A stretch of DNA of 64,000 nucleotides, taken from Neoconidiobolus thromboides FSU 785. Its lineage: Eukaryota > Fungi > Entomophthoromycota. Location: positions 118,227 through 182,226 of the forward strand of contig MU626275.1 in the NCBI GenBank assembly GCA_025603075.1, in the 5' to 3' direction. A program made the translations under genes and the position numbers. Below are positions 489 through 63,473 of the stretch, in pieces (position 1 is the stretch's first letter; the number at the start of each line of letters is the position of its first letter). The notes beneath the pieces are model-generated. The model was not told where the DNA came from. It ran no database searches and saw nothing but the letters and a program-made list of their open reading frames with translations.

Positions 489-587
489 GGGGATGTATTT
501 TTGTGTTTAAGAATTTTACTAACAAATTTTCCGCTTGAATAGCGCTTAAAAGGTGGAAAAAGTAATGAAATCAAAAAAATCATCCTC
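489..587 (+). mobile_element. 99-bp MITE, copy 1
   Basis: GGGGATG...CATCCTC; TSD ATAT/ATAT. Confidence 0.9.
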
Positions 588-1575
588 ATATCTTAATTGC
601 TAATAAATCAAAAAGTTAATATTGTGTATCACTTTAAAATCATACACTTATTGTCATTTGCTATGTATTAAACTTGTAACAGATTGTAACATGTTATATA
701 CATTTAAAAGTGTTTTAAATATGTAATTTTACTAAGTTAGCTTCAAATCCCTTATCAATTTCAAAGATCTTGCTCATCTCCCCAAACTCCCAAACTCGGT
801 TTAATCTTTTTCCTTGTTATAGAAGCAATTGAATATTTAAGATTTGTAACTAAGGTGCTCTTTATTAACTTTCAAACTTAGATGACTGCCCAATTAAAAT
901 ACAATCTAAAAGATATTTATTTTTTTAACAATTTTAATGCTATGGCTCTATTTAAAATAAGTAAAACTATTTACTGATCATCTCTTATTGAAACACTCTC
1001 ATTTATTTGGAGTAGAGTTATATAAGGTTAAAATATTTACAAACAGTGAATGGTAGTGGTCAAAAATAGTAGGAACCTTTTTACAAATTTTTATTCCTTT
1101 TGATAAAGAATTAATTTTTAACATTAAGTGAACAGAAGCTGATTAATTCATTAACTAATTAAAAGTTAAATCCTATCCTAACCTCCCTAATTCTAATTCA
1201 ACCCTAATATTTACTGTATACAGGTTATTTTTCTAAGCTTTTAATCTATTTGATTGTTTTTGATTACCATTTTTTTTAACTATAGAGTAATAAAAATCTG
1301 CAAAAGATTTTTACTGTCCTTAAGCATCACCTTACTTTATTCACATTTAATGAAGCAAGTAATAATAAAATACTTCTTTTGCATCTAAACGCAATGCATG
1401 ATGACATTAATCAATTATTTTAATTTATTAGTCTATTAATAATCTTTTAAATCGTTATTTTGGTATATTTGATAAATCCTTGTTAATTTATCACATAATC
1501 AAAAATGATGGATTATTAAGAATTTAACCTACATAATTTAAAAAATACCTTCGCTTTTTATGTCTTTATTTGAAA

Positions 1576-2767
1576 CTACATTTTGGCCTTTAGAAATGAT
1601 ACTTCGCAGTATTGGCTATCTTGTAGTTTATAATCAATATTGATAGCCAACCATAAAGTTATGATCGAAACAGTCACCGTATCGTCAAGAAAATTGATCA
1701 TAGCTAGGGGTACCATAGAAAAGAAGTAGAAATCAAGAAAACAAACAAAGAAATAATATAAACAATATCGTCCGTAAACACCTATAAATCCCCCCAAAAC
1801 AACTTAACATTATCCAATAAATTAAAATTTCAAATCCATAGACTAAGTAAATTTTCAACCTCAATAATAAAAAGTATACAAAGTTTATTTATAAGAGCCA
1901 TCAACCAACCCCATTTATTCATCACTGCCACAAAAAGCAACTAAGCAAACTAAAATTAACTATGAGTAAGAAATGATTTACATTACAATATGTTGTTCCA
2001 GAGATCAAGCTTCCAATATCAAACTCGGGCTCATCATTATTTAATTTATTATTAGGCGTTAAAGTTTCTGTATTCACTTTTGTGCTTTTGGTTTCTGTTT
2101 CCTCATCCGTACTGGTTGATTCTGTTGTTTTTGTAGGTTCATCATCACTTGATGTTTCTCCTGCACTTGATGTTTCTTCAACACTTGTTGGTTCCTCCGT
2201 TGGACTAGCTTCTTCTGTTGAATGCTCTTCTTCTGTTTTACTTTCTTCCTCTTTTTCACCATCAGTTGAAGTTTCACTTGTCTCCTCAGTTTGACTTGTC
2301 TTTTCAGTTTGATTTATATCTGTCGGCGTCAATTCAGCATTAACTGGTTCCGTGATCTTAGAATAAAAACTGGACTGACAGTTTAATAAACAGCCTGACA
2401 CATCTCCGCCTCCTGCTTGACATGCAACTGAACAATCAATGTGCTCTTGGGCTAAAAAAGGGGATTAATTTAATTTTTTATATTATCTAACTGAGCGTTA
2501 ACTTACCTTGCGTCAGTATTCTACCCTGAATACACTGAGTAATGCACAGGAAGTCGGAATCGCTACATGCGCATCCCAGACCAGCTATTATTTTTATTAA
2601 TAAAACTTTCAATCAAATTAACTTTTGAAATTACCTTTAACTAATTTAGATAGTTCATTTTTATCAATTTTGTTTACATGTTTATTGATGTTACTCGCTT
2701 TTTTCTTGGTGTTACTGGCTTGAATTAGAAACAAAAAATAGAATAAAAGTGACAAGTTAATTATCAT
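1576..2767 (-). CDS. Multi-exon secreted or membrane protein: signal peptide, small Cys-rich domain, Thr/Glu/Ser-rich stalk, possible hydrophobic C-terminus
   Basis: ATG 2767 gives MIINLSLLFYFLFLIQAS. GT-AG introns join exons reading GCACSDSDFLCITQC and HIDCSVACQAGGGDVSGCLLNC to the T/E-rich ORF 1922-2401. Linkage to the hydrophobic ORF 1576-1797 is uncertain. Confidence 0.6.
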
Positions 2768-3547
2768 TTTATTTTTTTAGTAGAATGATTATTTGATTAT
2801 GAATTTCTGTATTAAATGTTCTTATTCAAGTTTTAAAGGTTATTTCATGTAAATAAAAATTTGAAAACTAAACTTGATTTAATTTTTTTTCAACCTTTAT
2901 TTATAACCTCTATTCACTCTTGCTTCTCTTTCTCTCTATTGATAATTAAATGCCAACGTATTCACTTGATTAATAATATCAATATCATTGGTGTTATTCT
3001 CATTCTCTCATTCAATCCTCACTAAGAGGTTTAAATCTACTAATAAACCCTTATTATATTCTAAAATTCACACTATTTAATTCAATTCTTTGTTTGAAAT
3101 GAATTTTTAGAATTTCTCGATTGATGATCAAATATCTCCCATTCAATTCAAACTTTAAATGAGTCCCATTTCATTGGTCAGTTTGCTATATGCTGCATTA
3201 AAAATTATAGCTAAAGTTACAATTTGGAAAGTGTGAAATGATTGGCTAGCTGGGCTTAAAAATCTAGACAAGGAAAGTTTAGTAGGAGGTATGGACTAAC
3301 TAGCCTCCTTTTGGATTTTTAATAATAATATAATAATGAAAGCGCATATTTCCTATTCGCTTAATTAAAATACTACACTTATCACACTGTTTTCATCATA
3401 CATAAAATTACATTCAAGAGATCAAAAGCGGTGCTCAAAATTTGCACTAAAACAGAAAATCCAAAATATTCCTATTTCATTGGCTTAAATTCCAATATCA
3501 TTATAAACCCAATTTTCTATTAACTTTATCTTAACAAGTTCATAATC

Positions 3548-4428
3548 ATGAACCCAAACCAAGCTAATTTATATCAGAGACTGAACACAAACAGTAAACC
3601 AAAGGTAGCCCAATCTCGAACTAACATTTAATATCATCTAATAACTACGTAAACTAGGAAGATGAAGGCAATTATTTAAAAACCTGGGTAAAGCAAACGC
3701 TGTTACAAACAGATGAATTTGAAAAGATGTTTAAAGAAAAAGTAGAAAATAAAATAGTGCATCTCAGTGGGATGAGCTTGATTAAAAGTAAAGAGAAGAA
3801 GCGAATACTTGCAATAGTTAAAAGGATGAAGAAGGCAAAGCCATTGACGTGTAAAGAGAAGAGAGAGTCAGGGATCTATGAGATACCAGAGGAAGCTAAA
3901 AAGTAAGTTTGAATATAGGAAATAAGAAGTTAAATTTTGATCTTAGCTTTAAATAGATATGAGTATTTTGTCCCACTGAACAAACTGTGGCAGCAATATG
4001 TAGATGAGCTGGTTTGTAATGAGGGGAAGGAAAAAATAAAAAATCAGTTACTAAAGATGGATTATCATGGATCAATATTAAAAGGTAAATCAGAGCCTAT
4101 ATATTGGAAATGACAACAGCTTATTATTTATTAGTCATAAGGTCGACGAATCCAAGTTTAATTGGGAAACAGGGGATTGTGATTCAAGAAACTAAAAATG
4201 TATTTAAGATGATACAAAAGGATGATAAAGTTGTTAGTAAGAAATATATTATTTTTTATTTCTTGATTTTGTTTAATCTTTATTTTAGTAATACCAAAAA
4301 ATAACAGTGAGTTTGAGATTCAAGTTAAATCTTTTAGATATAGAATCATGGGCTCTAATTTCTGTTATAAGCCATATGAACGAGCAAGTAAAAAGTTCAA
4401 ACTTAAAAAGAACAATCCATTTTGTTAA
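3548..4428 (+). CDS. POP4: RNase P/MRP subunit Pop4/Rpp29 (5 exons)
   Basis: Spliced translation includes FVPLNKLWQQYV, LLKMDYHGSIL, VIRSTNPSLIGKQGIVIQETKNVFKMI, IPKNNSEF and YERASKKFK, all typical of Rpp29. Confidence 0.9.
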
Positions 4429-4524
4429 AGTATAGAAGAAAATAAATTTAATTTATAAATGATGTTGAATTTTTTTAATTAATTTATTTGTAAAAAAGAT
4501 CAATTTAGAAAGAACTTATTATTG

Positions 4525-8105: not shown

Positions 8106-8202
8106 GAGGATGTTTTTTTGGGTTCATTACTTTTTCCATCTTTAAGCGCTATTTGAGTGGAAAAATTATTAGTAAAATTCTTAAATACAAAAACACATCC
8201 CT
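8106..8202 (-). mobile_element. MITE copy 2
   Basis: Full length; TSD ATAT/ATAT. Confidence 0.85.
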
Positions 8203-8545
8203 ATATTTAGTCTAATAATTATAGCTTTATCAAAATTCAACCTTAAACAAGGTATATATAAGTAGTTTATTATGCACTATAATTATTCTAGAACTTATTT
8301 TAATATAATTAAATAATAAACCATTTTATTTTATGTTTTTAAGCAGTTTGGTAATAAACTTCCAAATTCAGTGTTGAATATTAAAAACAACGAAAATAAA
8401 ATTTGATATAATTTGATATAGACATTAAACATAAAATAGACTTATTGACATGAAAGTATTTATTTTAATTTTAATTTGGCTATTATTTTAAAAGTAGTAA
8501 TTAACCTAGCAGATTGATGATAAATAAGGTTGTCAAAATTAATAT

Positions 8546-8639
8546 AGGGTGTGTTTTTTGTTTAAGAATTTTATTAATAATCTTTCTACTCAGATAGTGC
8601 TTAAAAATGGAAAAAGCAGTGAAACCAAAAAATATCTCC
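8546..8639 (+). mobile_element. MITE copy 3 (diverged)
   Basis: Colinear with consensus; flanks ATAT/GTAT. Confidence 0.75.
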
Positions 8640-9058
8640 GTATTTATTTAGAGGATTTAATATTTTTTAGTTTTTTAATTTTGTAATCATAAGAATCCAG
8701 CTTCACTTTACGATAGTACAATATAAACTAAACTAGCGGAGAGGTTATTTCATAAAAACCTAATTCCTCCAACAACCATTTATTATGTATTTCTTTATTC
8801 TGATAAATAAATTTACAAAATTCCAAATATTAGAAAGTTCTGATTTGATTATTTGAGTTTAAAAAACCTCTTTTAACCAGGTATTTTCGAAATTGCTAAC
8901 AAATCGGTTAAAATTGGCGGAATTTTGGGCTAAATTTTAATTAAGCTTCAGCTTAAATAAAAATCCAGTTATACTTGAACTCTTTTTCTAGTTTAGTGAT
9001 AATTTTCGTAATCAAATTATTTATATAGCTACTTTTTTTAGAAGGCTGATCGTTATAT

Positions 9059-9155
9059 GGGAATATTTTTTTGATTTCATTACTTTTTCCGTTTTTAAGC
9101 ACTACTTGAGTGGAAAGATTGTTAGTAAAATTCTTGAACAAAAAAATACATCCTC
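9059..9155 (-). mobile_element. MITE copy 4
   Basis: Full length; TSD ATAT/ATAT. Confidence 0.85.
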
Positions 9156-9492
9156 ATATCTTAGTTGAATTTTGCCATTATTTTTTTCTTAAGTAGTTAA
9201 TTTTGTCTCAAGGTTTAGAGCATCTGTGTCTACCAAACCTAAGAGAAAAGCCTAGATAAAATTAAATTTAAAGCAAATTTTTTTTAAACATAAAACAAAG
9301 TTTGAAATTGTTTTTTCAATAAGTATAATCTATTATAAAAATAAGAAAAAATAATAATAAAAGATATAATTTTATTATATATAAAAAAAAGATTAAATTT
9401 GTTATTTTAAAAAAAGTTATCCACAACCGTACAAGTATTCCATACTTAAAAAAACATTTAACATAAACTATCACCTTTACTATCCCAATTTC

Positions 9493-19061: not shown

Positions 19062-19679
19062 TTAATTGATGAGTTACTCTTTATATTATTATTATTATTG
19101 AAATGGTAGAATTTTAGAATAAAAGTAAATATTTAAAATTTCGAGATGAGTAAAACAACTTGTGATGTCATTTCAGAAAAGAACCAATTAGATTTTAATT
19201 AATATGAATTGTCATAAAAACTCATTATGTAGTTAAATAGGATCAATGGATAACAAGGATATTAGATGGTAGAGAGGGTTATAAAGAAGGGATTTCAAAT
19301 AACAGTAATAATAAAAAGAATTTATTAGTTGTTAAAAGAAGACAATGAATATTAAAGTTGGACTATTAATTTTCACCCAAGTCATTGAAAGTTGAAATTA
19401 TTATACTTAGTTACTAATAATATTAAAATGAGATGGAAATAAATAACGTGACTACTTAAGTAGAATTTAAAAATTGAAACTTATAGGCCATGTTTTATAA
19501 TGTTGGAATAGGTTATTAAATCAAATTAAATACTAAAAATGAAATAATTTTAAAAACTATACTATTTAAATAAAATATCAAATAAATAGAAAGAACTTTG
19601 ATTATTTTTACTATCAAAAATTAATAAACATAAAAATATATCCCCATAATATTTAAATATGTAACTTCAATTTAAGAAT

Positions 19680-19717
19680 TTTGTTAGTAAAATTCTTAAA
19701 CATAAAAATACATCCCC
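19680..19717 (-). mobile_element. MITE copy 5 (half element)
   Basis: TTGTTAGTAAAATTCTTAAACATAAAAATACATCCCC, one end only. Confidence 0.7.
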
Positions 19718-19786
19718 ATATAGTTTTTTCGAAAAATTTACTAGCAATTTTTACTAAAATTTATTTTCGATGAAAAAATTATTTTT

Positions 19787-19876
19787 GGCTTCCTGAGGGA
19801 TTCGAACCCGCATCTTAGGAGGTTATATCAAATATGATTGGAAGGACCCATGTACTACCAGTTGTACTAAGGAAGC
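19787..19876 (-). tRNA. Intron-containing tRNA or tRNA pseudogene, most like tRNA-Gly(TCC)
   Basis: Acceptor stem GCTTCCT/AGGAAGC, D stem GTAC/GTAC with TGG loop, T arm GCGGG-TTCGAAT-CCCTC (one mismatch), CTTCCAA followed by a ~17-nt insert, and a T6 run ~10 nt downstream. The anticodon arm is imperfect, so the isotype is uncertain. Confidence 0.6.
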
Positions 19877-19976: not shown

Positions 19977-20073
19977 GGGGATTGCATTTTGTATTTAAGA
20001 GTTTTACTAGCAATTTTTCCGTTTAAATACCACTTAAGAGGGGGAAAAAGCAATGAAGTAGAAAATCACCTCC
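19977..20073 (+). mobile_element. MITE copy 6 (diverged)
   Basis: TSD AAAT/AAAT. Confidence 0.8.
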
Positions 20074-20509
20074 AAATATTGAAAATTGCATATTTTTATA
20101 TTGTAATAATACTAATATAAAAATTAAGCTAATTTTATACAAATTAATAAAAAAGGACAAATATTAAAAATAAATTGGAGATGTCTAAATTAGTTTCATT
20201 TTTTTATCCAATTTTAACTATTTTGCATTTTAAAAACTTCACTTAAAATTCTGTAGAAATAATTTTTTTATTAAAAAGCATAAATACCCAGACACAGTTC
20301 TAAATTACTATATTATAGTTTATACTGTAAGTTGATTGAGTTTCTACTAGAACTTAAATACATATTCTTATAAAGCCTCATTGAGAAATATTTATTATTG
20401 ACTGCTTTATAACCAACATTGCAGATTTACTATCAAATAAGTAAACTATTTCAATGTTATAATTATATTATTAATATATTACTGAGTTAATAAATAGCTG
20501 CATGCGAGG

Positions 20510-20973
20510 TGTGAAACCTGGTACTCAGTGATTGGAGTCAATAACAGCTATTACCTGGTTGACTACACTGTAAGTCGAAAGGTCTTAGTTTATGTGACTA
20601 AGATAGACTTGAATTATGAAGAACATCATGTAATAGGCTATGGACTATATAAGACAAATAGAATAAACAATGTTGATGTAAAATCTACGTAGAATATTAT
20701 CAAGAAAACTTAGTGGCTTTATTAAATGTTTGGGATATCAGGGAATAATTCAATTAAAAAGCCTCGAGCTATTATGTTTTAGAATCTCTTTTGTACTCTG
20801 ACAAGTATCGATATCAAAAGAAGAGGATAATATTCTTTGGGATGAAGTTAAAAATTCTCATAAAAAATCAAAATAAGGACATGGGATTGATTGTTTCTGA
20901 ACTCGAGAACACAATAACTTAAGTGATTATTATGCTATAATCAATCATAGAGCTGACAAAGCTATATTTCAGA
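20510..20973 (+). mobile_element. Solo LTR, 464 bp, copy 1
   Basis: Starts TGTGAAA and ends TTTCAGA; flanked by a 4-bp direct repeat GAGG (20506-20509 and 20974-20977); colinear with 52477-52940. Confidence 0.75.
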
Positions 20974-21613
20974 GAGGGAGTGGTTAGCCCCAAAACTATA
21001 ATTAATCATCCCTATATGGTACAAGTAATATAATAATAGTTTTTAAATATTATTACAATCACTTGCTCTTTGACTATATATTAACTTACCTATTAATAAC
21101 TTAAGTAATATTAACATTTAACAATTGATTTCTATCATTTAACAAACTACTTAGTAAACATCGAAATTTTTAAATTCTCTGTTATTTTCGTAAGATAAGC
21201 TGGGATTGATCTTTTAATTTTTCTATTTTCTATAGACTCTATAACTCTAATTGGAACTATATTGCTTTTTTTTGATGTATCAGATACTGGATAACAATGT
21301 AGTTTATTGTTACATTTAACAAAATGTAAATACTTTTTAATGCCTCATATTTTTATCATTTTTTTTGTATTTTTGTTTCTTTCATAGTTTTTAAAAATTA
21401 TAACTGTTTTTGTATTATTAACAGTCGAGTTATTAATTTTATTGTTCACAAATGAAAGCCTCAAATCTTGAAATTAATTAATTGATATATTCTATTTTAC
21501 TTAATGCTTTAAAACTACTTTTTCATTGTGAAAGATTTCCAAAATGTCTATCAACTATGCTTTTTCCATGATGATCAGCAAAAAAATTAAGATCAGTATT
21601 TAGACTATTATTT

Positions 21614-21712
21614 GGGGATGATTTTTTTGATTTCATTACTTTTTCCACCTTTTAAGCGCTATTTAAGCGGAAAATTTGTTAGTAAAATTCTTAAATACAA
21701 AAATACATCTTC
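21614..21712 (-). mobile_element. MITE copy 7
   Basis: 99 bp; TSD ATTT/ATTT; internally near-identical to copies 1 and 9. Confidence 0.9.
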
Positions 21713-22020
21713 ATTTATTTATTAATTTTTTTAAATATATAACGTAGAAACTCTTGAGATTTAAAATGATTTCCTGTATCTGTCTATATATTAATTTTTG
21801 TAAACCTTTTAAATAAAAGCTCTATAGAGATTAAATCAATTAAACAATCTCCTGCATATACTGAGTCATGATTTAGTATTTCAGATAAATAATCAAAATA
21901 AAATTCTGTCTATTGTTTTATCATCTCTCAAATATAAAACACCAAAACCTAATACTTATATGGCTTGTTTATTATAATGATCTAAATTTACTGAATCTGG
22001 TCTTGTTCCTATTTCCATAT

Positions 22021-22119
22021 GGGGATGTTTCTTTTGGCTTCATTATTTTTTCTATCTTTCAAGCGCTATTTGAGTGGAAAATTTATTAGCAAAGTTCTCA
22101 AACACAAAAATACATCCCC
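22021..22119 (-). mobile_element. MITE copy 8
   Basis: 99 bp; TSD ATAT/ATAT. Confidence 0.9.
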
Positions 22120-41023: not shown

Positions 41024-43321
41024 CTAAGTAGGAATAGGCTTTAAATAGGGATTAAAATACTGAGCCTCATCCAAGAAGGAGTCAGTAACTTTAGGACTAC
41101 TGCATTTTGTAATGTCAATTGAGTTAGCATGGCATTCAAAGTTAGGTAATTCTGATTTATATTTACAAACAAAACCATTTGGAGTATTAACCCAGCATTC
41201 AGGCGCATGTGGAGTACCCAATAAAATAAAACCATTTTGATTATATAAACATCTAGAACCTGCCATTGGACAAATACTATAATCACCCTCAGCTCCACCA
41301 TCATTTGGTAGATTAATGCATCGTTCTTTAATATTTAGATAAGAATATGGACATTTGTTTTCTTTAAACTCGAATTGAAATTTACATGTATAATGCTGGT
41401 TTTTTTTATCCATTATCCAACACGTTGGGGCATTTGGATCTAAATATGAATAGCTCAAATTTTCATTATAAGCGCATTGACTATTAGCTGCATTTGGGCA
41501 AGGAGGTGGCGGACGTTCTCTATTACAAGTCTTTATATCAAGATAACCAGCTTCACAAGTAGTACCTAAAAACCCTTTGCCTTTACACTCATATTGTGTT
41601 TTACCACGCTTCCAGCAATCAGGCGCAAATCCATCTTGTAACTTATAATCAATGCCTAAATTGTTTTTACATTTATCATTATAATTCGGACATGCCATTG
41701 GTACTTCACATGCCGTTATATCAATGGATAAATTAGGACATTTACCATTAAATTCCGCTTTATAACGACATTGATATGTATTTTCTACTTTAGCCCAACA
41801 TTCAGGTAAAGTAAAATCCGTATATCGGAATATATTAGTGTTTTGAAAAACACATGTATCATCTACTTTAGGACATATTCTTTTTGTTGTTAAAATAGGA
41901 CAAGTACCTATATCTACTGCACCATCAGGACATTTACCATTAAAATCTTTTTTAAATCGACAATAAAAAGATTTAGATCCTTTAATCCAACACTCAGGAG
42001 CTTTTGGATTTAAAGCACTAAAATAACCTAAATTATTATAATTACATTTGTCCACATTATTTGGACAATTAGGATTAACTACTACCGCTTCTTCTCCTTT
42101 ACATACACTAATATCTAATACGTTTAATGGACAAATACCACCTAATTCGGATTTATATCGACAGACATAACCATTGGGCGTTTTAGCCCAACATTCAGGA
42201 GTAGTGGGTGAATTTAAACTAAATAATGAAGTTTGTCGATATAAACATTTAATTGTTTCTTTAGGACATTTCAATTCATTATCAATGTCAGTAACTACCC
42301 CTGGTCGACATGGAGTGGTATCAATAGTTCCTGTTGGACATTTACCTTCTAATTCACGTTTATATTTACAAGCATAACCACTAATAGTACTTAACCAACA
42401 TTCTGGTGGTGATTTATCGGTTAATTTAAAGTTAGCAACGGGTGAATAAGTACATGAAGTACTTAATGGGGGACAATATTGTGGTACAACTTCTGTATTT
42501 GAAGAATCGGTTGTAGTATCTTTATAACCACATTTTGATAAATGTTGAAAACCTGGGGAACATTGACCTTTATTACCCATTTCACATAAATAACCGCCTT
42601 GAGTAGCCTTCCAACATTTTGGAGCATTTTTAGTTGTTACCGTTACTGGTATTTCACCATTAAAATAGCAAATGTCTTCTTGTGTAGGACATTTATTTGG
42701 AATATCAATATTATTATCGATATCAGGTAATTTAGTTGAATCATTTAAACAAGACTTAATATCTAAATATCCTAATGGACATTTATTATTTTCTTTTTTA
42801 ATACAAACATATTCTGATTTATATAGTCCCCAACATTGTGGTACCATTGAATTTGTAAATTTAACTTTAATACCAGTATCATAACTACATGAATCTTCTG
42901 AAGTTGGACATTTGTTTGGTTTTTTAATAGCATTTGGACTATCAATTATGTCTACTGATTCTTTTATTGGAGGTGGGGGTGGAGGTGGTAATGTAGTTTG
43001 ATTTTTACTAAAAATAGGATAACCACAAAAACCTACATTGATATAACAAGGTGGACATTCAATTAAACCTAAATCATCTAAATAATGACATGTATAACCG
43101 TTTAATGTTTTTAACCAACATTCAGGAGCAGAAAATTGATTAGGATAATAATCATAATATCCCATTTTACAAGTAGAACCTAAACTAGGACATTGTAATC
43201 CATTTTCTTTTTTAAAACCAAAAGATAAAAATTCTTTATCACTATCAATTTTTTGACTATAAAGGGTAGCTGTTAAAGTAAATAAAGTAAGTAATATACT
43301 TTGTAAAGTTGAGAGTAACAT
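41024..43321 (-). CDS. Secreted Cys-rich protein with ten ~56-aa six-cysteine repeats
   Basis: 765-aa single ORF with a signal peptide; ten copies of CP-x5-6-C...P-x-CW...(Y/F)-x-C...C...(D/N)I-x2-C. Confidence 0.85.
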   Translation of the reverse strand: MLLSTLQSILLTLFTLTATLYSQKIDSDKEFLSFGFKKENGLQCPSLGSTCKMGYYDYYPNQFSAPECWLKTLNGYTCHYLDDLGLIECPPCYINVGFCGYPIFSKNQTTLPPPPPPPIKESVDIIDSPNAIKKPNKCPTSEDSCSYDTGIKVKFTNSMVPQCWGLYKSEYVCIKKENNKCPLGYLDIKSCLNDSTKLPDIDNNIDIPNKCPTQEDICYFNGEIPVTVTTKNAPKCWKATQGGYLCEMGNKGQCSPGFQHLSKCGYKDTTTDSSNTEVVPQYCPPLSTSCTYSPVANFKLTDKSPPECWLSTISGYACKYKRELEGKCPTGTIDTTPCRPGVVTDIDNELKCPKETIKCLYRQTSLFSLNSPTTPECWAKTPNGYVCRYKSELGGICPLNVLDISVCKGEEAVVVNPNCPNNVDKCNYNNLGYFSALNPKAPECWIKGSKSFYCRFKKDFNGKCPDGAVDIGTCPILTTKRICPKVDDTCVFQNTNIFRYTDFTLPECWAKVENTYQCRYKAEFNGKCPNLSIDITACEVPMACPNYNDKCKNNLGIDYKLQDGFAPDCWKRGKTQYECKGKGFLGTTCEAGYLDIKTCNRERPPPPCPNAANSQCAYNENLSYSYLDPNAPTCWIMDKKNQHYTCKFQFEFKENKCPYSYLNIKERCINLPNDGGAEGDYSICPMAGSRCLYNQNGFILLGTPHAPECWVNTPNGFVCKYKSELPNFECHANSIDITKCSSPKVTDSFLDEAQYFNPYLKPIPT

Positions 43322-46165: not shown

Positions 46166-46259
46166 AGAGGTGTTTTTTAGTCTCATTATTTTCTATTTTT
46201 AAGCGCTATTTGAGTGGGAAGATTATTGATAAAATCCTTAAACACAAAAATACATCCCT
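46166..46259 (-). mobile_element. MITE copy 16
   Basis: TSD ATAT/ATAT; one end diverged. Confidence 0.8.
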
Positions 46260-46379: not shown

Positions 46380-46477
46380 GGGGATGTTTTTTTTGATTTC
46401 ATTATTTTTTCCATTTTTAAGCACTATTTGAGTGGGAAGATTGTTAGTAAAATTCTTAAACACAAAAATACATCTCC
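46380..46477 (-). mobile_element. MITE copy 17
   Basis: TSD ATAT/ATAT; about 120 bp from copy 16. Confidence 0.88.
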
Positions 46478-47011: not shown

Positions 47012-47050
<39 letters not shown>

Positions 47051-48621
47051 ACATAAATTTTACTCTTGAATTATATTTTACTTGTGATGGATATTCATCT
47101 TCAAAAGATAAGTCAGAAGCAATTGGATGGTTTGGTGAACTTATAATAATACCTGGATTAGCTTCATTTTTTAGACTTTGAGATAGAACTTGATTTGTAT
47201 TATTTAAAGGAGTTTTTATAGAATCATTAAGCGGCACAGTTAAATTATTAATCATGTCTGTCTTTGTCGATTCATTATTGATATTTTCTGTAATTAAATA
47301 AAATATTAGAATTATTAATAATTAAAGTTCATTATAGTAGTAACTTAATGTTTTACCTTGTTTATTTAATTCATCTTCCTCTTCACTTAATTCACCATCT
47401 TCTTTTTGATTGTTTGAATTATCATTGGCTGATATATTGATTTGGCTACTCTTAGGAGTCATATTAAATTCATTTGAAACTACAATTATATCGTTATTAT
47501 GATCTTGATTACAATTATTTTTATCATCAATTAATTCAATTGTATCTTTTATTACAATGCAATTGTTTGATGAATTATTAAAATCCTTTGAAGTACTATC
47601 TACTTTATCTACATCATCTTGGTCACAATAGTTTAAAACTCTCTAAAAAAATAAATTGAAATTAAAGAAATCAAATTATAAATCATTACGTTTTTTCTAT
47701 TCTTTGGCTTACGACGAGTTGTTTTCTTAACTGTATTATTTAAGCTACCATTGTTATTATTTACAGTAGGGATAAGTGAATTATAATCAATAATAGGTCT
47801 ATTAAAAGCTGTATTATTTTTACTTCTAACTCTAGGATTATTATGATGTTCACGCTCTATAATTGGTATTTGACTATTTTGATTAACTCTTTCAGGTTCA
47901 ATAACTGATCTTTGACTATTTTGATTGACTTTCTGAGATTCTATAGGCTGTACTTGACTATTTTGATCCTCATTATTATTTATTCTTTTTGATCTTTTAA
48001 ACTAAATTAAAATAAGTATTTATATAACTAATAAAGATAACCAAATATACTTTAGATGATAATGGATTAATATGAATATCTTCTACATTTAGGTTAAGAC
48101 GTTTTGAGATAAAATCCGCTCTATGAATCTGAAAACAAAATCAATTAAAAAATTAAAAAGTCAAAAAATTCATTTACTCCTTGATTATCTTTTGTTACGA
48201 TAAAACACTTTTCATCTGAAATTTCTTCATAGGTGCCTCTAGCCACTTTTCTTGGCCCCTCTCTCTATAGAATTGGAATTAATATGCTACTAATTAATAT
48301 TTAAATAAATTTACTATTGTTTCTTGAATTTCAAATCTACCTTGATTTAATTCTAAATTAAAAGGTAATTGAATTTGATCACCAAATTTCAATTGAGCTA
48401 AAAAAACATAATAAGAATAAAATCAATAAGTTTAAAATTAATTGAAAACGAATAAATTTACTTAATAACTCAAAATGATAAAATTTATTTTTACTTTCCC
48501 CTTTAGCTTGACCTATACTTGACCTCGAAAAATTAATAGTATGAAAGCCATTATCATTTTGATTAGTATTAACTTGTTGTTGTTGATTCATTTGTCTTGA
48601 ATTACAAGGTTGATTATTCAT
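46715..48621 (-). CDS. Multi-exon hypothetical protein with a short conserved N-terminal domain and N/Q-rich low-complexity tail
   Basis: GT-AG-bounded exons read QLKFGDQIQLPFLELN, GPRKVARGTYEEISDEKCFIV and IHRADFISKRLNL, followed by Asn-rich exons; stop at 46715. Exon structure only partly resolved. Confidence 0.55.
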
Positions 48622-49430
48622 TTTTAAAGTTGAAAAATAAAAATAAAATGTTTTTTTATAGGTTTTTTTAGTTTTTCAAGTATTGAAAAGTCTTCCTTTT
48701 CATTGGTTGGATTAGAACCTATGAATATAAAATTGAATAAACTCAAAATACAAAATAAATTAAGTTGCAAAGTAATTAGTAGAGGGTTCATTAATTATTT
48801 GGTTTTTGGTGATATTGAAATTCATAAGGTAGAGTAAATCCAAAAGATCTTATTTGACTATACTAACTCATAAACTCTATATCACACACTTAAGATAGAG
48901 TTAGATAAGGGCATAAAAAATGGCTGTTTTATTTGAACTGACTTTTTAGATTGAAGAAAGTAAGCACAATATAGAATGAATTTAAACTCAGTTAAAAGGA
49001 TAACAAATGCAACAATTATATTATATTTTACCTAGTCTCTTTTGTTTATACTTATTTTTATTTTAGTAGTTTACACAAATTATTATTATTTTAATATGAG
49101 ATAGTTTTATATTTTTAATACATTTTTAATAGTTTTACTTTTAACCCTTTTCTTAAATGAGATAATTGACTTCAATTTAATAGCAAATAATATCCAAAAA
49201 AAGGTGACTATCTTTTTATTCATTTTTATAATTTGTATTAATACTAACAAAAAAACTCAAAACATGTACTAATTTTTATCTGTTATTATAATAATAATAA
49301 CAAAGAAGTTAACTTAAATGTTATCTTTGTTTTATTTTAATATATAATAAATAAAAATCAAGTATTCACTTCTAATAAACAAAGATCAATAAGATATTAA
49401 TAATCTACTTTTAATTTTTATCTCAATTTA

Positions 49431-49519
49431 ATTCATCACCAACATAAACATATATTACACTTATATTATATTATAATTCATCACCAACATAAACATATAT
49501 TACACTTATATTATATTAT
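49431..49519. repeat. 45-bp tandem duplication
   Basis: ATTCATCACCAACATAAACATATATTACACTTATATTATATTAT occurs at 49431 and 49476. Confidence 0.9.
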
Positions 49520-49778
49520 CAAACTGAAAGATACTTATTGTCCAATGAAGGATAATCCGTAGTTTTATAGTATTAAAAGCTCAATTCTACTTGTTCAATA
49601 AAATTTCTTTGTATATCAGAAAAAACATTTTAAAAATATTTAAAATGGTGAGTACACGCAACTTTTCCAATTTACTATACTATTTTCATATTAAATATGA
49701 TATTTGAGTTAAGAAAAGTACCTATAATTCATTAACTTCATCCGAAAAGGAGCTTACTTTCTGAGCCAATTTACTCAT

Positions 49779-49874
49779 GGGGTATTTTTTTGGCTTTATT
49801 ACTTTTTCCATCTTTTAAGTGCTAATTGAATGAAAAATTTGTTGCTAAATTCTTAAACACAAAAACACATCCCC
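49779..49874 (-). mobile_element. MITE copy 18
   Basis: TSD TCAT/TCAT. Confidence 0.82.
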
Positions 49875-49899
49875 TCATTTATCTTTTTTTGGCCATTTA

Positions 49900-51990
49900 T
49901 TTTACTTTCTTTTAAGTAACTGAATTGTCAATAACTGCTATCTTGATCTTCTTGTTTTTAGAAGCTGTGTTTAATTACTATAAGTTGATGAATCAATCCC
50001 ATCTCTTAGCTCCACTGTATCTTTTACATCTAAATATTTGATAAATCCTCGAAAGCTATTGGATCACCATGGGAACTTTTAACAATATAAAGAAAATGAT
50101 TATTATTATTTTCTATACTTCTAATGTCATTAGAGACGGTTATAGTTGAATTTAGATTATAAATAGGACTAATTAAAGTTTGTGTATTGTTGCATTTAAC
50201 ACTGGGTTTAATATGAGATTTAGAAACTATTGACTTTCTTAAAAGTTCTTCAGTATATTGGTAGAAAAAATAGGTCAATTAACTATAAATCAATCAATCA
50301 ATCAATATTACTTTTGTTTTTGTTTTCTAGAACCGAGAACCCTCAGTATGTAAAGGCCATTGTGAAACAGATTCAGCAATATAATCCTAGAACTATCTTG
50401 AATAAAAACTATTAACAACAATAGAATAATTTAACCCATTGCTACTATCGACTAATATAATGAAACTTTTTCTATTATTATTCTCTACAAGTTCCTCTGA
50501 TGACTTTATCTCTCCTAATTTTCTATCAATATTGATTTAAAATGTTAATTATTAACTGCTTTCATTTCTACATTCATTAATTCATAAACTCGAAAACTAG
50601 TACGATTTTTTTTAAGAATACAAGGTAACCTAAGTTGATCTTCAAACTGGCCATGATCTTTGAAGAAAATCAATAAATAGGTAAGACTTAATTTGAATTT
50701 TTCAAGATTACTTAATAACTCGAAGAGCCTAAAATCCTTATTATTATCTCTTTCAGTTTCAGTTAAACCGGATTCGATAAAGTGAATATTACAAAAGTCA
50801 GTAAGCTTGATTAATAATAGTATCTTGGATTTCCTCTTGCTTTTGCTTTAGATTAGAATCCAAACTAGTCTCATCTTAAAATTGAAATTGATGACGAATT
50901 GATTTCTTAGTTTTTATTATTAAGCACCAAAATTCAATTTTATTGGTTTAAAATGAAATAAATTAAAATTAACTTTGATGTGAATTCAAGGAATAGAATA
51001 TGGGGATGTATTCTTGTTTAATAGTTTTACTAACAATCTTTCCGCTTAAATAACGCTTAAAAAATGGAAAAAGTAACAAAAATCAAAAAAAAATATCCCT
51101 ATGTTCTTCAGTATCCTTTTTTCACTGTTTTTGAACTTTAAAATTTCAACTATTTTCAAAATTCATTATCATAGATCTAATTAACAATTTTATTAATTGT
51201 TACTTTTTAATATCATTGATTAAGGTAATTCATTTCCGAACCTGTAATATATGTACGTACTCGAAAGTCCAAATTAGTGTTAAAATAGCAATAGATCAAA
51301 GGTACTAATAATTTCATATAGAAATAGTTTAGTATCCTATACTTAAACATCTGTATCAAAGTTATTAAAGCTAATAAAGTAATTTTATCAACTTTTAATT
51401 CCTATGATTTATTAATAATGTTTAATAAAGTGACCAAGTTTTATTAAATTATTTTGTAACATTAAAATAATCAATGTTAGTAAAATTTAATATAAATCCC
51501 AATGTTTATTTAGATGAGATAGAAACTAAGAATATTCCATAATTTTTGAGTAAAAATAAAATAAATAGTAAACTCAATTTAAGATAAGTTAACTAACTCT
51601 TCAAACTTACTTGTAAGCTGAGCTTTGCTTTTTTTCCTGCTTCTCCTAAAGTTTTCATTCTGCTGTCAAATTTTGCTATTTTATTAACAGTATTGACAAT
51701 TTCATCTTCAACTTTTATATTATTATTAATTTCATCACCATTTTTAACCATTTTATTATTACCAGTTATAGTGCTATTTACAATTTCCTAAAAAATAAAC
51801 GTTGATAAGTGTTTTTTTAATATTTTAATTATAATAAATTTTGCATATGCTAATCTTTTAATAACTTTATATTTAATAAAATCCCCACCTCTATTGCTTT
51901 TAGCTATTATACTTACTTTCCTGTCATTGGTGTTATTACAATTACTTTGGGTCAAATTGACAAGTTTATTTTGATTTGTGTTAAGCCCTA
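49900..51990 (-). pseudogene. Degenerate coding remnants, possibly a paralog of the 46.7-48.6 kb gene
   Basis: A splice-bounded open exon ~51610-51787 and stop-interrupted frames including GQFEDQLRLPCIL near 50600-50660. Confidence 0.3.
51002..51100 (+). mobile_element. MITE copy 19
   Basis: Flanks ATAT/ATGT. Confidence 0.82.
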
Positions 51991-52161
51991 CAAATCAAAA
52001 TTAATTAAAATTTAATAGATTATATAAAACCTGTATTATTATTATTATTTATGATTTATTGATTCACAAAATGAATTGAAATGTTAAGTATTGATCTAGG
52101 GATTAATCCTAGATGGAAATTTAATGTTTAAAGCATTATATGATTGAGTATAATAATACAT

Positions 52162-52259
52162 GGGAGTGTTTTTTTAACTTCATTATTTTTTCCATTTTTT
52201 AAGCACTATTTGAGTGGAAAATTTGTTAGTCAAATTCTTAAAAACAAAAATACATCCCC
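52162..52259 (-). mobile_element. MITE copy 20
   Basis: Flanks ACAT/ATAT. Confidence 0.85.
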
Positions 52260-52476
52260 ATATTATAGGATCTATTTTATTAGTTTGATTTTGACTAATA
52301 ACTTCTACTATATCTATCAACTCATTTCAATTATCAACCATGAATTTACCATATCACTTTAAGTATTATCATTATAGGATTTGCTTCATTAATTTGAGAA
52401 TTATTTACAACAAAGTCAACCATACTAATAAGATTACTACCCACTTTTAAGTCTGCTGGATCATTTTGTTTATCAA

Positions 52477-52940
52477 TGTGAAATCTGGTACTCAGTGTTT
52501 GCAGTCAAAAACAGTTATTGCCTGCTTGACTACACTATAAGTCGAAAGGTCTTAGTTTATGTGACTAAGATAGACTTGCATTATAAAGAATAGCACGTAA
52601 TAGGCTACAGACTGTATAAAACAAATACAATAGACAATACTAATGTAAAATCTACGTAAAATATTATTAAGAAAACTTAGTGGCTTTATTAAATGTTCGA
52701 GATATCAGTGAATAATTCAATTAAAAAGCCTCGAGCTATTATGTTTTAGAATCTCTTTTATATTCCGATAAGCATAAATATCAAGACGAGAGGATAGTAT
52801 TCTTTGAGACGAAGATAGAAATTCTCATAGCAAATCAGAATGAGAGCATGGGACTAATTATCTCTATAATCGAGAATACAACAGCCTAAGCAATTGTTAT
52901 GCTATAATTAACCATGGGGCTGACAAAGCGATATTCCACA
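52477..52940 (+). mobile_element. Solo LTR, 464 bp, copy 2
   Basis: TGTGAAA...TTCCACA termini (TG..CA with a short inverted repeat); same length as and colinear with 20510-20973; no matching TSD. Confidence 0.75.
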
Positions 52941-52987
52941 GGTTAAAAGCATAACTCCAAGCACAAGTACAAAATCAAAAAAAAACT

Positions 52988-53086
52988 GGAAGTGTTTTTT
53001 TTGGCCTGATTACTTTTTCCGTCTTTTAAGCACTATTTAAGTAGAAAGATTGTTAGTCAAACTCTTAAACACAAAAATACATCCCC
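52988..53086 (-). mobile_element. MITE copy 21
   Basis: Colinear with consensus; TSD not clearly preserved. Confidence 0.8.
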
Positions 53087-53110
53087 ACTATAATAATAAG
53101 TACAACATAT

Positions 53111-53208
53111 GGGAGTGTTTTTTTGACTTTATTATTTTTTCCATTTTTTAAGCGCTATTTAAGCGGAAAATTTGTTAGTAAAATTCTTAAACACAAAAAT
53201 ACATCCCC
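53111..53208 (-). mobile_element. MITE copy 22
   Basis: TSD ATAT/ATAT; 24 bp from copy 21. Confidence 0.9.
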
Positions 53209-53657
53209 ATATGCAGTTTCAAAGGTTATTGTTAAAATTAACTTATAAAAAAATATAACCCATATAACTTTAAAAGTTAGAACTAAAATACTGGAAGTTC
53301 AAGTTAATGCAAACTGAAAAATAATATTGAAAAAGTTTAAAAAATTTATTTTTTGAAATTACAATTAGTAAAAAAAGCAGCCCCTATTTATATTTTTTGG
53401 AACTTATTAATGTCAAGTTTAATAATTTTATGTTATTAGATTGTTTAAAATATTTTAATATAAATTTATATATATATATAAATAGTTAATTATTAGTTGC
53501 AGTGCAATTAAAAAATTTATAATAAAATAAAAAATATAATCAAAGTTGAATTTTATTTCTATTTTTAATCAATTTTAAAACAGAGCATCAGTTATAAAAT
53601 CTTTATATATTAATATACGTTTATTATATTTTTTTCATTTAATTTTTTTTATCATAT

Positions 53658-53755
53658 GGGAATGTTTTCTTTGGCTTTATTATTTCTTTCATCTTTTAAG
53701 CACTATTTGACTGGAAAGATTATTAGTAAAACTCTTAACACAAAAATACATCCCC
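53658..53755 (-). mobile_element. MITE copy 23
   Basis: Flanks ATAT/ACAT. Confidence 0.82.
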
Positions 53756-54699
53756 ACATATTGAAATTAAGTAGAATAATAATTTTAAATAGCTATTGAT
53801 TTTTGTATAAAGTATGATTTTTTTATTCAAATTTTATATATATTTACTCGAGCTTTTAGTTTTCAAATAGAGTATTTTGAAATTAATAGATATTTAAAAA
53901 TATGTTCTAAAATTTTATTAATTGTCTAAATTTGGCTTTAATCTAGTGATAAATATATTTGGAAAAAAAACGTGACTACTGTTTTTAATAATATAGACAT
54001 AAATAAAAAATCAAAATCTTCAAAACAAGCTTAATTCTTTCCTATACAATAATAATTTAAAAAAAGACATAAAAGGCAAAATAAGCATTAACTTTGCTTT
54101 AATTTAGTAGATCATATATAATTAATATACTTATCCAATAAACCAAGATAAACTTTTTTAGCTACAACTTTTTTAGCTACAACTTTTTCCTCCCTTTTAT
54201 CAAAGCCTAAATAATGTAGCTCTCAATATCTTTAGTAACCAATCCTGTTGTCCCGCTTATTTAATCTTTAGGACTATCACCCTATTTAAAAGCAGCTTTA
54301 AAGTTGTCCAAAAAGACTTAAATAAAATATAATTCGTTTTATAGGCTACAATGAATACTTCGACTCTTACTATATTACTATTCTTATATATCGAAACCTT
54401 CTAAATCCCATTTGTTTAGTTTATCAAACAATATATGTATATGTATTATCCTTACGCTACATTATGGCTCTTAGATATTTGACGTCAAAAGAAGATACAC
54501 TAAAAACAAGTCGATAATTTTATTGTATTATAACGATGGAAGATCCAATTTGATTTATTAGGCTGAGAAGTTTGGTTGTGTTTGATTCAATAGAAATTCA
54601 CTTGGATGCATTGAAAGTAATATTTAAAATAACGACTATATGTGGCTTGTCAAATTCTCTATCATTATATTATATATTAAAAACAGTGTATTGAATTTA

Positions 54700-59255: not shown

Positions 59256-59670
59256 TTAGTAGCATTGTGCATTACCAGCAGTACCTCTACAAGTAGTACC
59301 ATCAGCACATGGGTTAGACCAAAGTGNNNNNNNNNNNNNNNNNNNNNNNNNNNNNNNNNNNNNNNNNNNNNNNNNNNNNNNNNNNNNNNNNNNNNNNNNN
59401 NNNNNNNNNNNNNNNNNNNNNNNNNNNNNNNNNNNNNNNNNNNNNNNNNNNNNNNNNNNNNNNNNNNNNNNNNNNNNNNNNNNNNNNNNNNNNNNNNCCT
59501 CTACATGGGAAACTAAATTGACCACCTAAAGGTGAACTCATATCATAATCGATTGCTCCTTTATTTCCAGTCAAATGTTTAGAACGCCTTGGGGCTGGAC
59601 TAATAACTTCCATGTGACTGTAAATGGTACCAAAGCTAGATAAGACAATAATGGAATCTACAAATTTCAT
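59256..59670 (-). CDS. AA11-like lytic polysaccharide monooxygenase with C-terminal CBM19-like module, copy A (middle in gap)
   Basis: Signal MKFVDSIIVLSSFGTIYS then H-MEVISPAPR...SSPLGGQFSFPCR (N-terminal His; SPL..FPC as in AA11). C-terminus WSNPCADGTTCRGTAGNAQCY*. Gap 59327-59497. Confidence 0.6.
59327..59497. other. Assembly gap (171 N)
   Basis: Run of N. Confidence 1.
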
Positions 59671-61099: not shown

Positions 61100-61193
61100 G
61101 GGGATGTATTTTTCAAGAATTTTACTAACAATCTTTCCGCTTAAATAGCGCTTGAAAAATGGAAAAAACAATGAAGTCAAAAAAAACACTCCC
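61100..61193 (+). mobile_element. MITE copy 24
   Basis: TSD ATAT/ATAT; short internal deletion. Confidence 0.88.
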
Positions 61194-61411: not shown

Positions 61412-62327
61412 CTAATAACATTGTGCGTTACCAAGAGCCCCTTTGCAGGTAGTACCATCAGCACATGGGTTAGACCAAAGTGCTTTGTTGAAGCACATGG
61501 CAATTGTTGAACCATTGAGACAATACATTTTACCATCTTCACANNNNNNNNNNNNNNNNNNNNNNNNNNNNNNNNNNNNNNNNNNNNNNNNNNNNNNNNN
61601 NNNNNNNNNNNNNNNNNNNNNNNNNNNNNNNNNNNNNNNNNNNNNNNNNNNNNNNNNNNNNNNNNNNNNNNNNNNNNNNNNNNNNNNNNNNNNNNNNNNN
61701 NNNNNNNNNNNNNNNNNNNNNNNNNNNNNNNNNNNNNNNNNNNNNNNNNNNNNNNNNNNNNNNNNNNNNNNNNNNNNNNNNNNNNNNNNNNNNNNNNNNN
61801 NNNNNNNNNNNNNNNNNNNNNNNNNNNNNNNNNNNNNNNNNNNNNNNNNNNNNNNNNNNNNNNNNNNNNNNNNNNNNNNNNNNNNNNNNNNNNNNNNNNN
61901 NNNNNNNNNNNNNNNNNNNNNNNNNNNNNNNNNNNNNNNNNNNNNNNNNNNNNNNNNNNNNNNNNNNNNNNNNNNNNNNNNNNNNNNNNNNNNNNNNNNN
62001 NNNNNNNNNNNNNNNNNNNNNNNNNNNNNNNNNNNNNNNNNNNNNNNNNNNNNNNNNNNNNNNNNNNNNNNNNNNNNNNNNNNNNNNNNNNNNNNNNNNN
62101 NNNNNNNNNNNNNNNNNNNNNNNNNNNNNNNNNNNNNNNNNNNNNNNNNNNNNNNNNNNNNNNNNNNNNNNNNNNNNNNNNNNNNNNNNNNNNNNNNNNN
62201 NNNNNNNNNNNNNNNNNNNNNNNNNNNNNNNNNNNNNNNNNNNNNNNNNNNNNNNNNNNNNNNNNNNNNNNNNNNNNNNNNNNNNNNNNNNNNNNNNNNN
62301 NNNNNNNNNNNNNNNNNNAAGTTGCAT
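61412..62327 (-). CDS. Paralog of the AA11/CBM19 gene, copy B (mostly in gap)
   Basis: C-terminus CEDGKMYCLNGSTIAMCFNKALWSNPCADGTTCKGALGNAQCY*. The start and upstream region resemble copy A (CATGATTAAAGTTGT). Gap 61544-62318. Confidence 0.55.
61544..62318. other. Assembly gap (775 N)
   Basis: Run of N. Confidence 1.
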
Positions 62328-63308
62328 GATTAAAGTTGTATTGGTTTTAATTCTCACAGAGAAACAGAAATTGAACTTTGATAATGTATGATGTCCTTTT
62401 TTTATTGCTTATATACCATTCTGTCAAGTACCTTGTTGTACCATGGTTATGGTGTTAATAATTAGCCCTGATAACTCAAAGTTATTTTAAATTTTGAAGT
62501 ACCATATTGGTACAACTTGTTCTTTGTAAGCCCCTTGTGTTAATAAATTAAAACTTAATTAGATTTTTGACTATATAGTTAAACTACATTTTAGATTGAT
62601 TTTTTATTAATTTGGATAAAAACTAAAATCAAGATAGTAGTCTAAAGTAATAAATATATTTATATTTGTGTTTAAATTAAAGGTTTAAAAATAAATTAAC
62701 TAACAACTTTTAATGTTATTTATATAAACCTCATTATTTTCATCAAAGCCAAATCAAAGAAATATTAGATATCCTCTTCAAAAGTCGATTTAAAAATCAT
62801 AGCTATTTAATGTATTTGATTTAAAGAATATTCACTAATGTAATTTTTAAAATTACTATTAAAATAAATTAAACATAATTTTTCCTACATGGACCTAAAA
62901 GCATCATAAACTAAGTGCTTTAAACAATCAGAAACCCTTAAAACTATTTGACATGCTCAGTCTATGATGCTTTCAAGCTATGTAAGAAAATCCATGCTTA
63001 AGCTGTTCTAGGATTAACGTTATAACTTATATTCATAACCTATTTTTATAAATTTTGAGCTATTTAATATTTTGATGTCAACAATGTAAAATTGAAAGTC
63101 AAATTTTTATCAAAATGCAGGGACCCTGTCAAAAAAGTATTTTTCAATAAGAATTATTGCACTATTAAAACTCTGCTTTTATTTAAATAACTCAATTGAT
63201 TAACTCTGAGGTATTAATGCTTTTTTTCCTATAATGTTTTATAAAACAGTTTAATTGGTTTCTATATTTTCTTTAACAAAATATTAACTTAAAGATCAAA
63301 ATATAGAT

Positions 63309-63393
63309 AAGGATGTATTTTTTTGTTTAAGAATTTTACTAGTAATCTTTCTACTTAAATAGCGCTTAAAAATGGAAAAACAAATGAATTCCA
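63309..63393 (+). mobile_element. MITE copy 25 (truncated)
   Basis: GGATGTATTTTTTTGTTTAAGAATTTTACT...AGCGCTTAAAAATGGAAAAA; far end missing. Confidence 0.75.
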
Positions 63394-63403
63394 AAGAATA
63401 TAT

Positions 63404-63473
63404 GAGGATGTTTTTTGGTTTTATTACTTTTCCATTTTTAAGCGCTATTTAGCGGGAAAATTCTTAGTAAAAT
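63404..63473 (-). mobile_element. MITE copy 26 (truncated, inverted next to copy 25)
   Basis: ATAT-GAGGATG end intact; other end lost. Confidence 0.75.

Follow-up and report, generated by a model that had tools for sequence, protein, structure and literature searches.

Sola2 is, to our knowledge, among the least studied superfamilies of eukaryotic cut-and-paste transposons, and we know of no Sola2 element whose activity has been demonstrated. Its insertions carry a signature of 4-bp, AT-rich target-site duplications (TSDs) of the form AWWT (ATAT, AAAT, ATTT) (PMC3627910), and two Sola2 transposases of which Bao and Jurka (2013) printed the sequences contain the blocks ...FFWSDGAKHFKS... and ...YHGKSDVDRHF... 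(PMC3627910). A survey of fungal genomes, in which Sola1 to Sola3 were searched for with transposase profiles, listed Sola2 as a single case, in Aspergillus flavus; an entry of Sola into fungi by horizontal transfer was suggested, and the Zoopagomycota sampled were without Sola2 (Muszewska et al., 2017; PMC5751038). Here, we describe a repeat of about 99 bp that recurs throughout a stretch of 64,000 nucleotides (hereafter the window) of the fungus Neoconidiobolus thromboides FSU 785 (assembly GCA_025603075.1, contig MU626275.1, positions 118,227 to 182,226). This repeat is a miniature inverted-repeat transposable element (MITE), very probably a non-coding derivative, through internal deletion, of a cut-and-paste transposon of the Sola2 superfamily.

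The window, of which the G+C content is about 26%, was examined together with two other contigs of the same assembly, L001 (20.9 kb, contig MU626333.1) and L002 (6.4 kb), both fetched for a purpose other than the counting of MITEs; the density of the MITE therefore refers to 91 kb from these three contigs. Comparison samples X1, X2, X3 and X4 were contig sets (Logan) of DNA runs with totals of about 25-29 Mb, X2 and X3 being filed under the same species label.

Results

A high-copy MITE family in the window

A search with nhmmer, using the consensus of the original prediction, which had been made from the letters of the window, returned 26 matches, and a hidden Markov model (HMM) rebuilt from them recovered the same 26 real copies together with two chance-level scraps beside a tRNA gene. 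In the window, 18 sites matched a 31-nt probe of the 5' end with three mismatches or fewer, and no site did so in shuffled sequences. Near full-length copies (91-99 bp) account for 25 of the 26, the last being a 41-bp 5' fragment at 19676-19717 on the minus strand, which adjoins the tRNA-Glu gene (19787-19876). Ten copies lie on the plus strand and 16 on the minus strand; together they cover 2,465 bp, i.e., 3.9% of the non-N window. The number of about 26 copies in both orientations and the share of about 4% given by the original prediction were thus borne out, and so were the two structural features that it had described, namely the imperfect terminal inverted repeat (TIR) GGGGATGT...ACATCCCC and the nested inner TTTTCC/GGAAAA repeat. 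The MITE ends, GGGGATGTATTTTT... and ...AAAAAACATCCCC, are complementary at about 13 of their first 15 positions. No open reading frame (ORF) was found in the 25 copies of 91-99 bp.

The copies range from near-identical to decayed, as had been proposed from the sequence, and Kimura two-parameter (K2P) distances to the consensus of 0.05 to 0.28 indicate that young and old copies are both present. A young subfamily is formed by the copies at 489-587 (plus strand), 21614-21712 (minus) and 23790-23888 (plus), among which two to three positions differ. The consensus of the original prediction corresponds to this subfamily and differs from the majority consensus of the window at several internal positions. 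The copy nearest to the latter is that at 24512-24610 (plus, K2P 0.05), and the oldest is that at 19977-20073 (plus, K2P 0.28), with 46166-46259 (minus, K2P 0.24) and 8545-8641 (plus, K2P 0.23, ends decayed) being also strongly diverged. Substitutions comprise 228 transitions and 66 transversions. No bias resembling repeat-induced point mutation was seen in the copies, C>T, G>A, A>G and T>C being about equally frequent.

Target-site duplications and empty sites

Alignment of the copies with their flanks, combined with a curated table, revealed a perfect 4-bp TSD in 16 of the 21 clean-ended copies, the other five differing by one base. The sequence ATAT, which represents only 1.3% of the 4-mers of the window, is duplicated in 12 cases: on the plus strand at 489-587, 23790-23888, 24512-24610, 39970-40067 and 61100-61193, and on the minus strand at 8106-8202, 9059-9155, 22021-22119, 29211-29307, 46166-46259, 46380-46477 and 53111-53208. 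The perfect TSDs are completed by AAAT in two copies (19977-20073 and 21614-21712), AAGT in one (36407-36505, minus) and ATGA in one (49779-49874, minus). One-base differences are seen at 38070-38160 (plus), a copy with internal deletions, and at three copies of the minus strand, 52162-52259 (ATAT/ATGT), 52989-53086 (TAGT/CAGT) and 53658-53755 (ATGT/ATAT). The 3' end is decayed in 25038-25134 (minus), as are both the 3' end and the TSD in 51002-51098 (plus). PIF/Harbinger, hAT, piggyBac and Tc1/mariner were excluded as candidate superfamilies by the 4-bp length of the duplication.

Two copies could be compared with an empty site. For the copy at 24512-24610, contigs of X3 (record 23) and X4 (record 30) join position 24506 to position 24610, so that 103 bp (99 + 4) are skipped and one ATAT is left, while X1 and X2 have contigs that stop within the copy, which fits its presence there. 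Because X2 (present) and X3 (absent) bear the same species label, this insertion is polymorphic within that label. A presence/absence polymorphism, which the original prediction had suggested looking for between isolates, was found between sequenced samples at one insertion. The second case is a paralogous empty site of the copy at 21614-21712: L001 and L002 both carry a single AAAT where the window carries AAAT-MITE-AAAT. Comparison of a second stretch (48300-54200) with the other samples yielded no additional empty site; the copy at 53658-53755 is spanned by contigs of X3 and X4 and hence present in both.

Two places in the window show MITE pieces in close contact. At 63309-63497, two oppositely oriented MITEs meet at an ATAT: the copy at 63309-63406 (plus) has its 3' end replaced by the following copy, 63409-63497 (minus), which abuts it or is inserted into it and of which the 5' end is decayed. 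The pair is probably a nested insertion followed by decay. At 19619-19760, a second GGGGATATATTTTTATG-like start stands beside the 41-bp fragment, and short TTTTACTAGCAA-like scraps flank the tRNA-Glu gene on both sides; this region looks like a small graveyard of MITE pieces.

Dispersal and copy number

The MITE is not restricted to the window. Six copies were found in L001 and four in L002, giving a combined density of 36 copies in 91 kb. A confinement to this locus, which had been named as part of the outcome that would favor local duplication over transposition, was accordingly not observed. Extrapolated from this density to contig sets of 25-29 Mb, the genome-wide number suggested is about 10,000 copies, as an order of magnitude, and the depth agrees with it. 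Indeed, the summed contig depth at MITE bins is about 2e6 in X1, against about 450 for single-copy sequence, and 1.7-2.6e5 in X2 to X4, against 33-46; these values are summed contig word depths and not copy numbers, and only an order of magnitude can be read from them. The earlier proposal of possibly thousands of copies genome-wide is thus supported both by the copies on other contigs and by a depth several thousand times that of single-copy sequence. In the same way, the interpretation of the repeat as a non-autonomous DNA transposon of the MITE type is supported by the TIRs, the 4-bp TSDs, the precise empty sites and the copies on other contigs.

A Sola2 relic within the MITE-bearing region

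A decayed, 5'-truncated relic of a Sola2 transposon occupies positions 20177-22020 on the minus strand. This strand translates to stop-ridden fragments, including FFADHHGKSIVDRHFG, in which three motifs can be recognized: YFDYLSEILNH, TDTGNHFKS (containing the second catalytic aspartate) and HHGKSIVDRHF (containing the third). These motifs are colinear, lie in one frame and occur nowhere else in the window. When the 94-aa catalytic segment of Sola2_DFa-2 (PMC3627910, Additional file 3) was searched against the window by tblastn, the best match was found at 21900-21529 on the minus strand with E = 3e-12, the next best being at E = 0.03. The single large gap of this alignment coincides exactly with the MITE at 21614-21712, which means that insertion of this MITE separated the second catalytic aspartate of the relic from the third. 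The 3' terminus of the relic reads ...GACATCTCC, followed by AATT. Besides this MITE, the relic is interrupted by a repeat of 465 bp at 20510-20974, and according to depth the stretch from 20.16 to 22.02 kb is itself a high-copy repeat. A Pfam scan of the ORF pieces of the relic gave no match at E <= 10; there is no Pfam model for Sola2, as confirmed by the fungal survey (PMC5751038). The superfamily had not been visible in the original prediction, and a broken Sola2 copy is present within the very region that it covered.

Some features of the relic were observed alongside. The string 'AATCATCCC' at 21004-21017 was considered as an element terminus and rejected, being part of the coding remnant of the relic. 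The truncation point of the relic coincides with the edge of the MITE at 22021-22119, yet this MITE is flanked by a perfect ATAT/ATAT. Other genomic copies of the relic run past 22020/22021 and encode the first catalytic block, ILDFKQ. The second repeat, of about 465 bp, is found in the window at 20510-20974 and 52477-52941 (85% identical) and in L002 at 1-304. Its copy within the relic is lacking from other genomic relic copies (joint 20505->20974), and the flanks compared with L002 overlap by 3 bp, maybe a 3-bp target duplication. The depth of this repeat is hundreds to thousands of times that of single-copy sequence, and Rfam returned for it only a sub-threshold match to a small nucleolar RNA, judged to be due to chance.

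Complete Sola2 elements share their ends with the MITE

A stop-free piece of 41 aa from the relic, searched against 1.8 billion representative proteins, had two matches, P0001 (87% identity) and P0002 (61%). P0001 comes from N. thromboides contig MU626333.1, i.e., from L001. Through P0002, a family of intact transposases was reached, about 570 aa in length, in which the blocks DFK(E/Q)N, W(S/T)DxGxHFRS and HGKSxVDGHFG are conserved, and so was P0024 of N. thromboides FSU 785, from which L002 was obtained. The D1, D2 and D3 blocks are conserved in the transposase alignment, and all proteins of the family match the published Sola2 segment. By DNA comparison of L001, L002 and the window, boundaries were set for two complete elements, one of 2,364 bp at 9520-11883 of L001, flanked by ATAT/ATAT, and one of 2,446 bp at 496-2941 of L002, flanked by ATAT/AAAT. 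The original prediction had advised a search for longer elements sharing the GGGGATG termini around a transposase: no such element was found in the window outside the known copies, whereas the 2.4-kb Sola2 elements of L001 and L002 do carry GGGGWTGT tips.

The first ~47 bp and the last ~50 bp of the L001 and L002 elements, and the 3' end of the window relic, are colinear with the two halves of the MITE at 68-71% identity, and the tips themselves, GGGGWTGT and ACATCCCC, are identical. The inner TTTTCC/GGAAAA repeat of the MITE is the subterminal inverted motif of the parent, TTAATCCAAATTTT on the 5' side and AAAATTGGATAAAA on the 3' side. Anchored alignments of the ends were then compared with 5,000 random genomic segments. 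None of these segments scored as well as the 5' end of L002 (z = 4.0) or its 3' end (z = 4.5), and only one did so for the 3' end of L001 (z = 3.6) and one for the 3' end of the window relic (z = 3.9). The 5' end of L001, which bears a 10-bp deletion, was matched by 250 segments (z = 1.7) and is not significant. Besides, the AWWT pattern known for Sola2 fits 14 of the 16 perfect TSDs. The family therefore combines a short uniform size, TIRs, a fixed-length TSD with empty sites, a dispersed high copy number and ends common to an element encoding a transposase, which are the features by which a MITE is recognized.

Several points weigh against a Sola2 origin of the MITE or limit it, in addition to the nature of the depth values mentioned above. 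The 5' end of L001 does not rise above background, and two of the 16 perfect TSDs (AAGT and ATGA) deviate from strict AWWT. The search for an intact transposase of this family in N. thromboides came up empty: the copies in the window, L001 and L002 are all full of stops, and a profile search returned no N. thromboides protein of at least 314 aa. Searched with nhmmer at E <= 1, the MITE model missed the ends of the relics. Because the ends of the relics and those of the MITE agree at only some 70% of positions, the relics are related to the parent of the MITE but are not themselves that parent. Finally, of the roughly 8-10 copies for which presence or absence was assessable, only one was polymorphic, and the absence of the copy at 24512-24610 could in principle reflect a precise excision instead. 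On a 2.7-kb contig from a run (L003), which encodes an intact 571-aa relative, no MITE-like ends were found.

Part of these points would also favor the idea that the MITE belongs to another superfamily with 4-bp TSDs (Ginger, Academ, Sola1 or Sola3) and resembles the Sola2 ends by coincidence, namely the ~70% identity, the relic ends missed by the MITE HMM and the one comparison in five that was not significant. However, the colinearity of both ends extends to the very termini, where the tips GGGGWTGT and ACATCCCC are shared, four of the five comparisons beat at least 4,999 of the 5,000 random segments, the Sola2 elements have the same ATAT/AAAT flanks and the published Sola2 target pattern fits. 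Moreover, the 91 kb covered here showed no transposase of any other type. Such a coincidence is consequently very unlikely.

Some of the Sola2 elements were also observed to lie close to tRNA genes. In two of the three elements examined, the element ends about 200 bp from such a gene: tRNA-Glu at 19787-19876 against position 20177 in the window (a later MITE insertion being discounted), and tRNA-Trp at 9250-9323 against position 9520 in L001, with no tRNA gene in L002. The geometry differs between the two, and the sample is too small to speak of a preference. In Smittium angustum and Smittium megazygosporum (Kickxellomycotina), relatives of the Sola2-like transposase (P0042, P0043 and P0045) bear the annotation of hypothetical proteins, a hint that the distribution of Sola2 in Zoopagomycota is broader than the survey of 2017 had shown.

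Relation to genes, transcripts and structure

Frames of at least 80 codons make up 37% of the window, and 24 of the 26 copies lie outside them. Of the two exceptions, one, at 23790-23888, overlaps a P450-like ORF at its first codons; the other, at 24512-24610, is located in a frame of 80 codons that passes through this very copy. The original prediction had placed no copy in an intact coding sequence. The avoidance of open frames fits an AT-rich target preference together with selection. The P450-like ORF (23294-23890, minus strand, 198 aa) has its start in or at the edge of the young MITE at 23790-23888.

A contig of 1,579 nt from an RNA run matches the window at 49490-51068 with 0 mismatches; it includes the whole of the MITE at 49779-49874 and ends inside the MITE at 51002-51098. 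In the same run, the depth is zero in neighboring bins, and a nearby contig is spliced across 48398-48461 (CT..AC on the plus strand, GT..AG on the minus strand). Because of this drop in depth and of the spliced intron, the MITE at 49779-49874 is probably part of a transcript. Close to it, a stretch of 45 bp at 49429-49473 is missing from the contigs of X2, X3 and X4, and an ambiguity of 46 bases at the joint points to a tandem duplication of which one unit is present or lacking depending on the sample.

The inclusion of one copy in an RNA-run contig and the overlap of another with the start of the P450-like ORF could speak for a dispersed functional element, i.e., a structured RNA or a regulatory hairpin of which the spread and the conservation are driven by a host function and not by selfish transposition. 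The young subfamily indeed folds better than shuffled sequences as single-stranded DNA (z = -3.0). In contrast, no such advantage over shuffles was seen for another copy (z = +0.58), and the consensus structure of 32 copies reaches only -0.1 kcal/mol with a covariation term of only -0.41. The hairpin potential ascribed to the repeat from its nested inverted repeats is thus seen in the young subfamily, but neither in that other copy nor in the consensus fold. Furthermore, there is no Rfam match, the copies diverge by up to 28% through a symmetric, transition-rich decay, and the pairing is that of the inverted ends of the parent. The hairpin appears as a by-product of these ends, no conserved RNA structure was found, and a spread driven by a host function is even less probable than a fortuitous resemblance to Sola2.

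Genomic context

Eukaryotic genes in the window encode a RasGEF, a PH/FERM protein, a P450, an MFS transporter and an isocitrate-lyase-like protein, and a 765-aa ORF at 41024-43321 has an exact counterpart on contig MU626275.1. The intron-containing tRNA-Glu gene at 19787-19876 is single and constitutes the only Rfam match across the whole window. Two assembly gaps, 59327-59497 and 61544-62318, are bordered by coding-like, non-MITE sequence. The nearest MITE, 61100-61193, is 351 bp from the second gap, and no copy lies within 350 bp of either. The MITE finding is independent of the continuity across both gaps, which could conceal additional copies.

Discussion

A Stowaway-like MITE mobilized by a Tc1/mariner (IS630-type) transposase, with the flanking ATAT read as a TA duplication plus conserved terminal bases, is the least probable of the explanations considered, since most flanks are indeed ATAT and contain TA, but in AAAT/AAAT (two copies), AAGT/AAGT and ATGA/ATGA the duplication extends to the full 4 bp, which excludes a TA duplication and leaves the required geometry absent, the empty allele skips 103 bp (99 + 4) and keeps one ATAT, the paralogous empty site keeps one AAAT, and the MITE termini align with a Sola2 element and not with a Tc1 element.

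The derivation from a Sola2 transposon, by comparison, accounts with high probability for the 99-bp repeat, and a mechanism can be proposed on this basis. The MITE would have retained only ~47 bp of the 5' end and ~50 bp of the 3' end of its parent. These ends carry the imperfect GGGGWTGT...ACATCCCC TIR and the TTTTCC/GGAAAA subterminal motif. A Sola2 DDD transposase supplied from elsewhere in the genome may then bind the MITE ends and excise the element, which would be reinserted at AT-rich 4-bp targets, mostly ATAT, with duplication of the target. We infer that the MITE is mobilized in trans by this Sola2 transposase family, and that its direct parent is a closer, perhaps still intact, Sola2 copy. 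The near absence of copies from coding sequence would result from target preference together with selection.

A MITE derived from a Sola2 transposon is of a known kind in principle and implies no new mechanism. What is added here is the relic within the MITE region, the two empty sites, the boundaries of complete elements and the statistical test of the shared ends. A literature search found no paper naming this MITE family, Repbase and Dfam being outside that search. A broader picture can be put forward, although only tentatively and with considerable doubt: Sola2 might be an old, recently active and compact (2.4 kb, ~570 aa) resident of early-diverging (Zoopagomycota) fungi instead of a rare horizontal visitor, and N. 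thromboides might have undergone a very large MITE burst, with about 10,000 copies that account for ~4% of the genome; insertions would still segregate among isolates, and part of the copies would belong to transcripts and to gene 5' ends. If true, N. thromboides would be a natural system for studying Sola2 transposition. As it stands, the MITE family, to which about 4% of the examined sequence belongs and of which at least one insertion varies between samples, widens the known host range of the superfamily and offers hundreds to thousands of natural target sites from which the target choice of Sola2 can be read. This also matters for genome annotation, as copies adjoin genes, are sometimes located inside transcripts and in one case overlap the start of a P450-like ORF.

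The closest described relatives are the Sola2 elements of dictyostelids (DFa-1/2/3 of Dictyostelium fasciculatum and PPa-1/4/5 of Polysphondylium pallidum; PMC3627910), with which those of N. thromboides share 4-bp AWWT TSDs and short imperfect TIRs. The dictyostelid transposase and the window relic also have colinear ...HFKS... and ...HGKSxVDRHF... blocks in common. However, the dictyostelid elements are 10-15 kb long and carry Fanzor1 genes, whereas the fungal ones described here are 2.4 kb long and encode only a transposase of ~570 aa. The terminal sequences of the two groups are unrelated, and a high-copy MITE derivative is not described for dictyostelid Sola2 in that study (PMC3627910).

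Compared with the fungal survey, in which Sola2 was a single case (PMC5751038), Sola2 is here a high-copy resident of N. thromboides, with related proteins in Smittium. As for the MITE itself, it resembles Stowaway (derived from Tc1/mariner) and Tourist (derived from PIF/Harbinger) in being about 100 bp long, non-coding, bounded by TIRs, uniform in size and present in very high copy number. Like them, it is found near genes and outside coding sequence, and its mobilization in trans by a related autonomous element is presumed. It differs from both in its TSD, which is TA or TWA in Stowaway and Tourist and 4 bp, mostly ATAT, in the N. thromboides MITE, and in its parent superfamily, which is Sola2.

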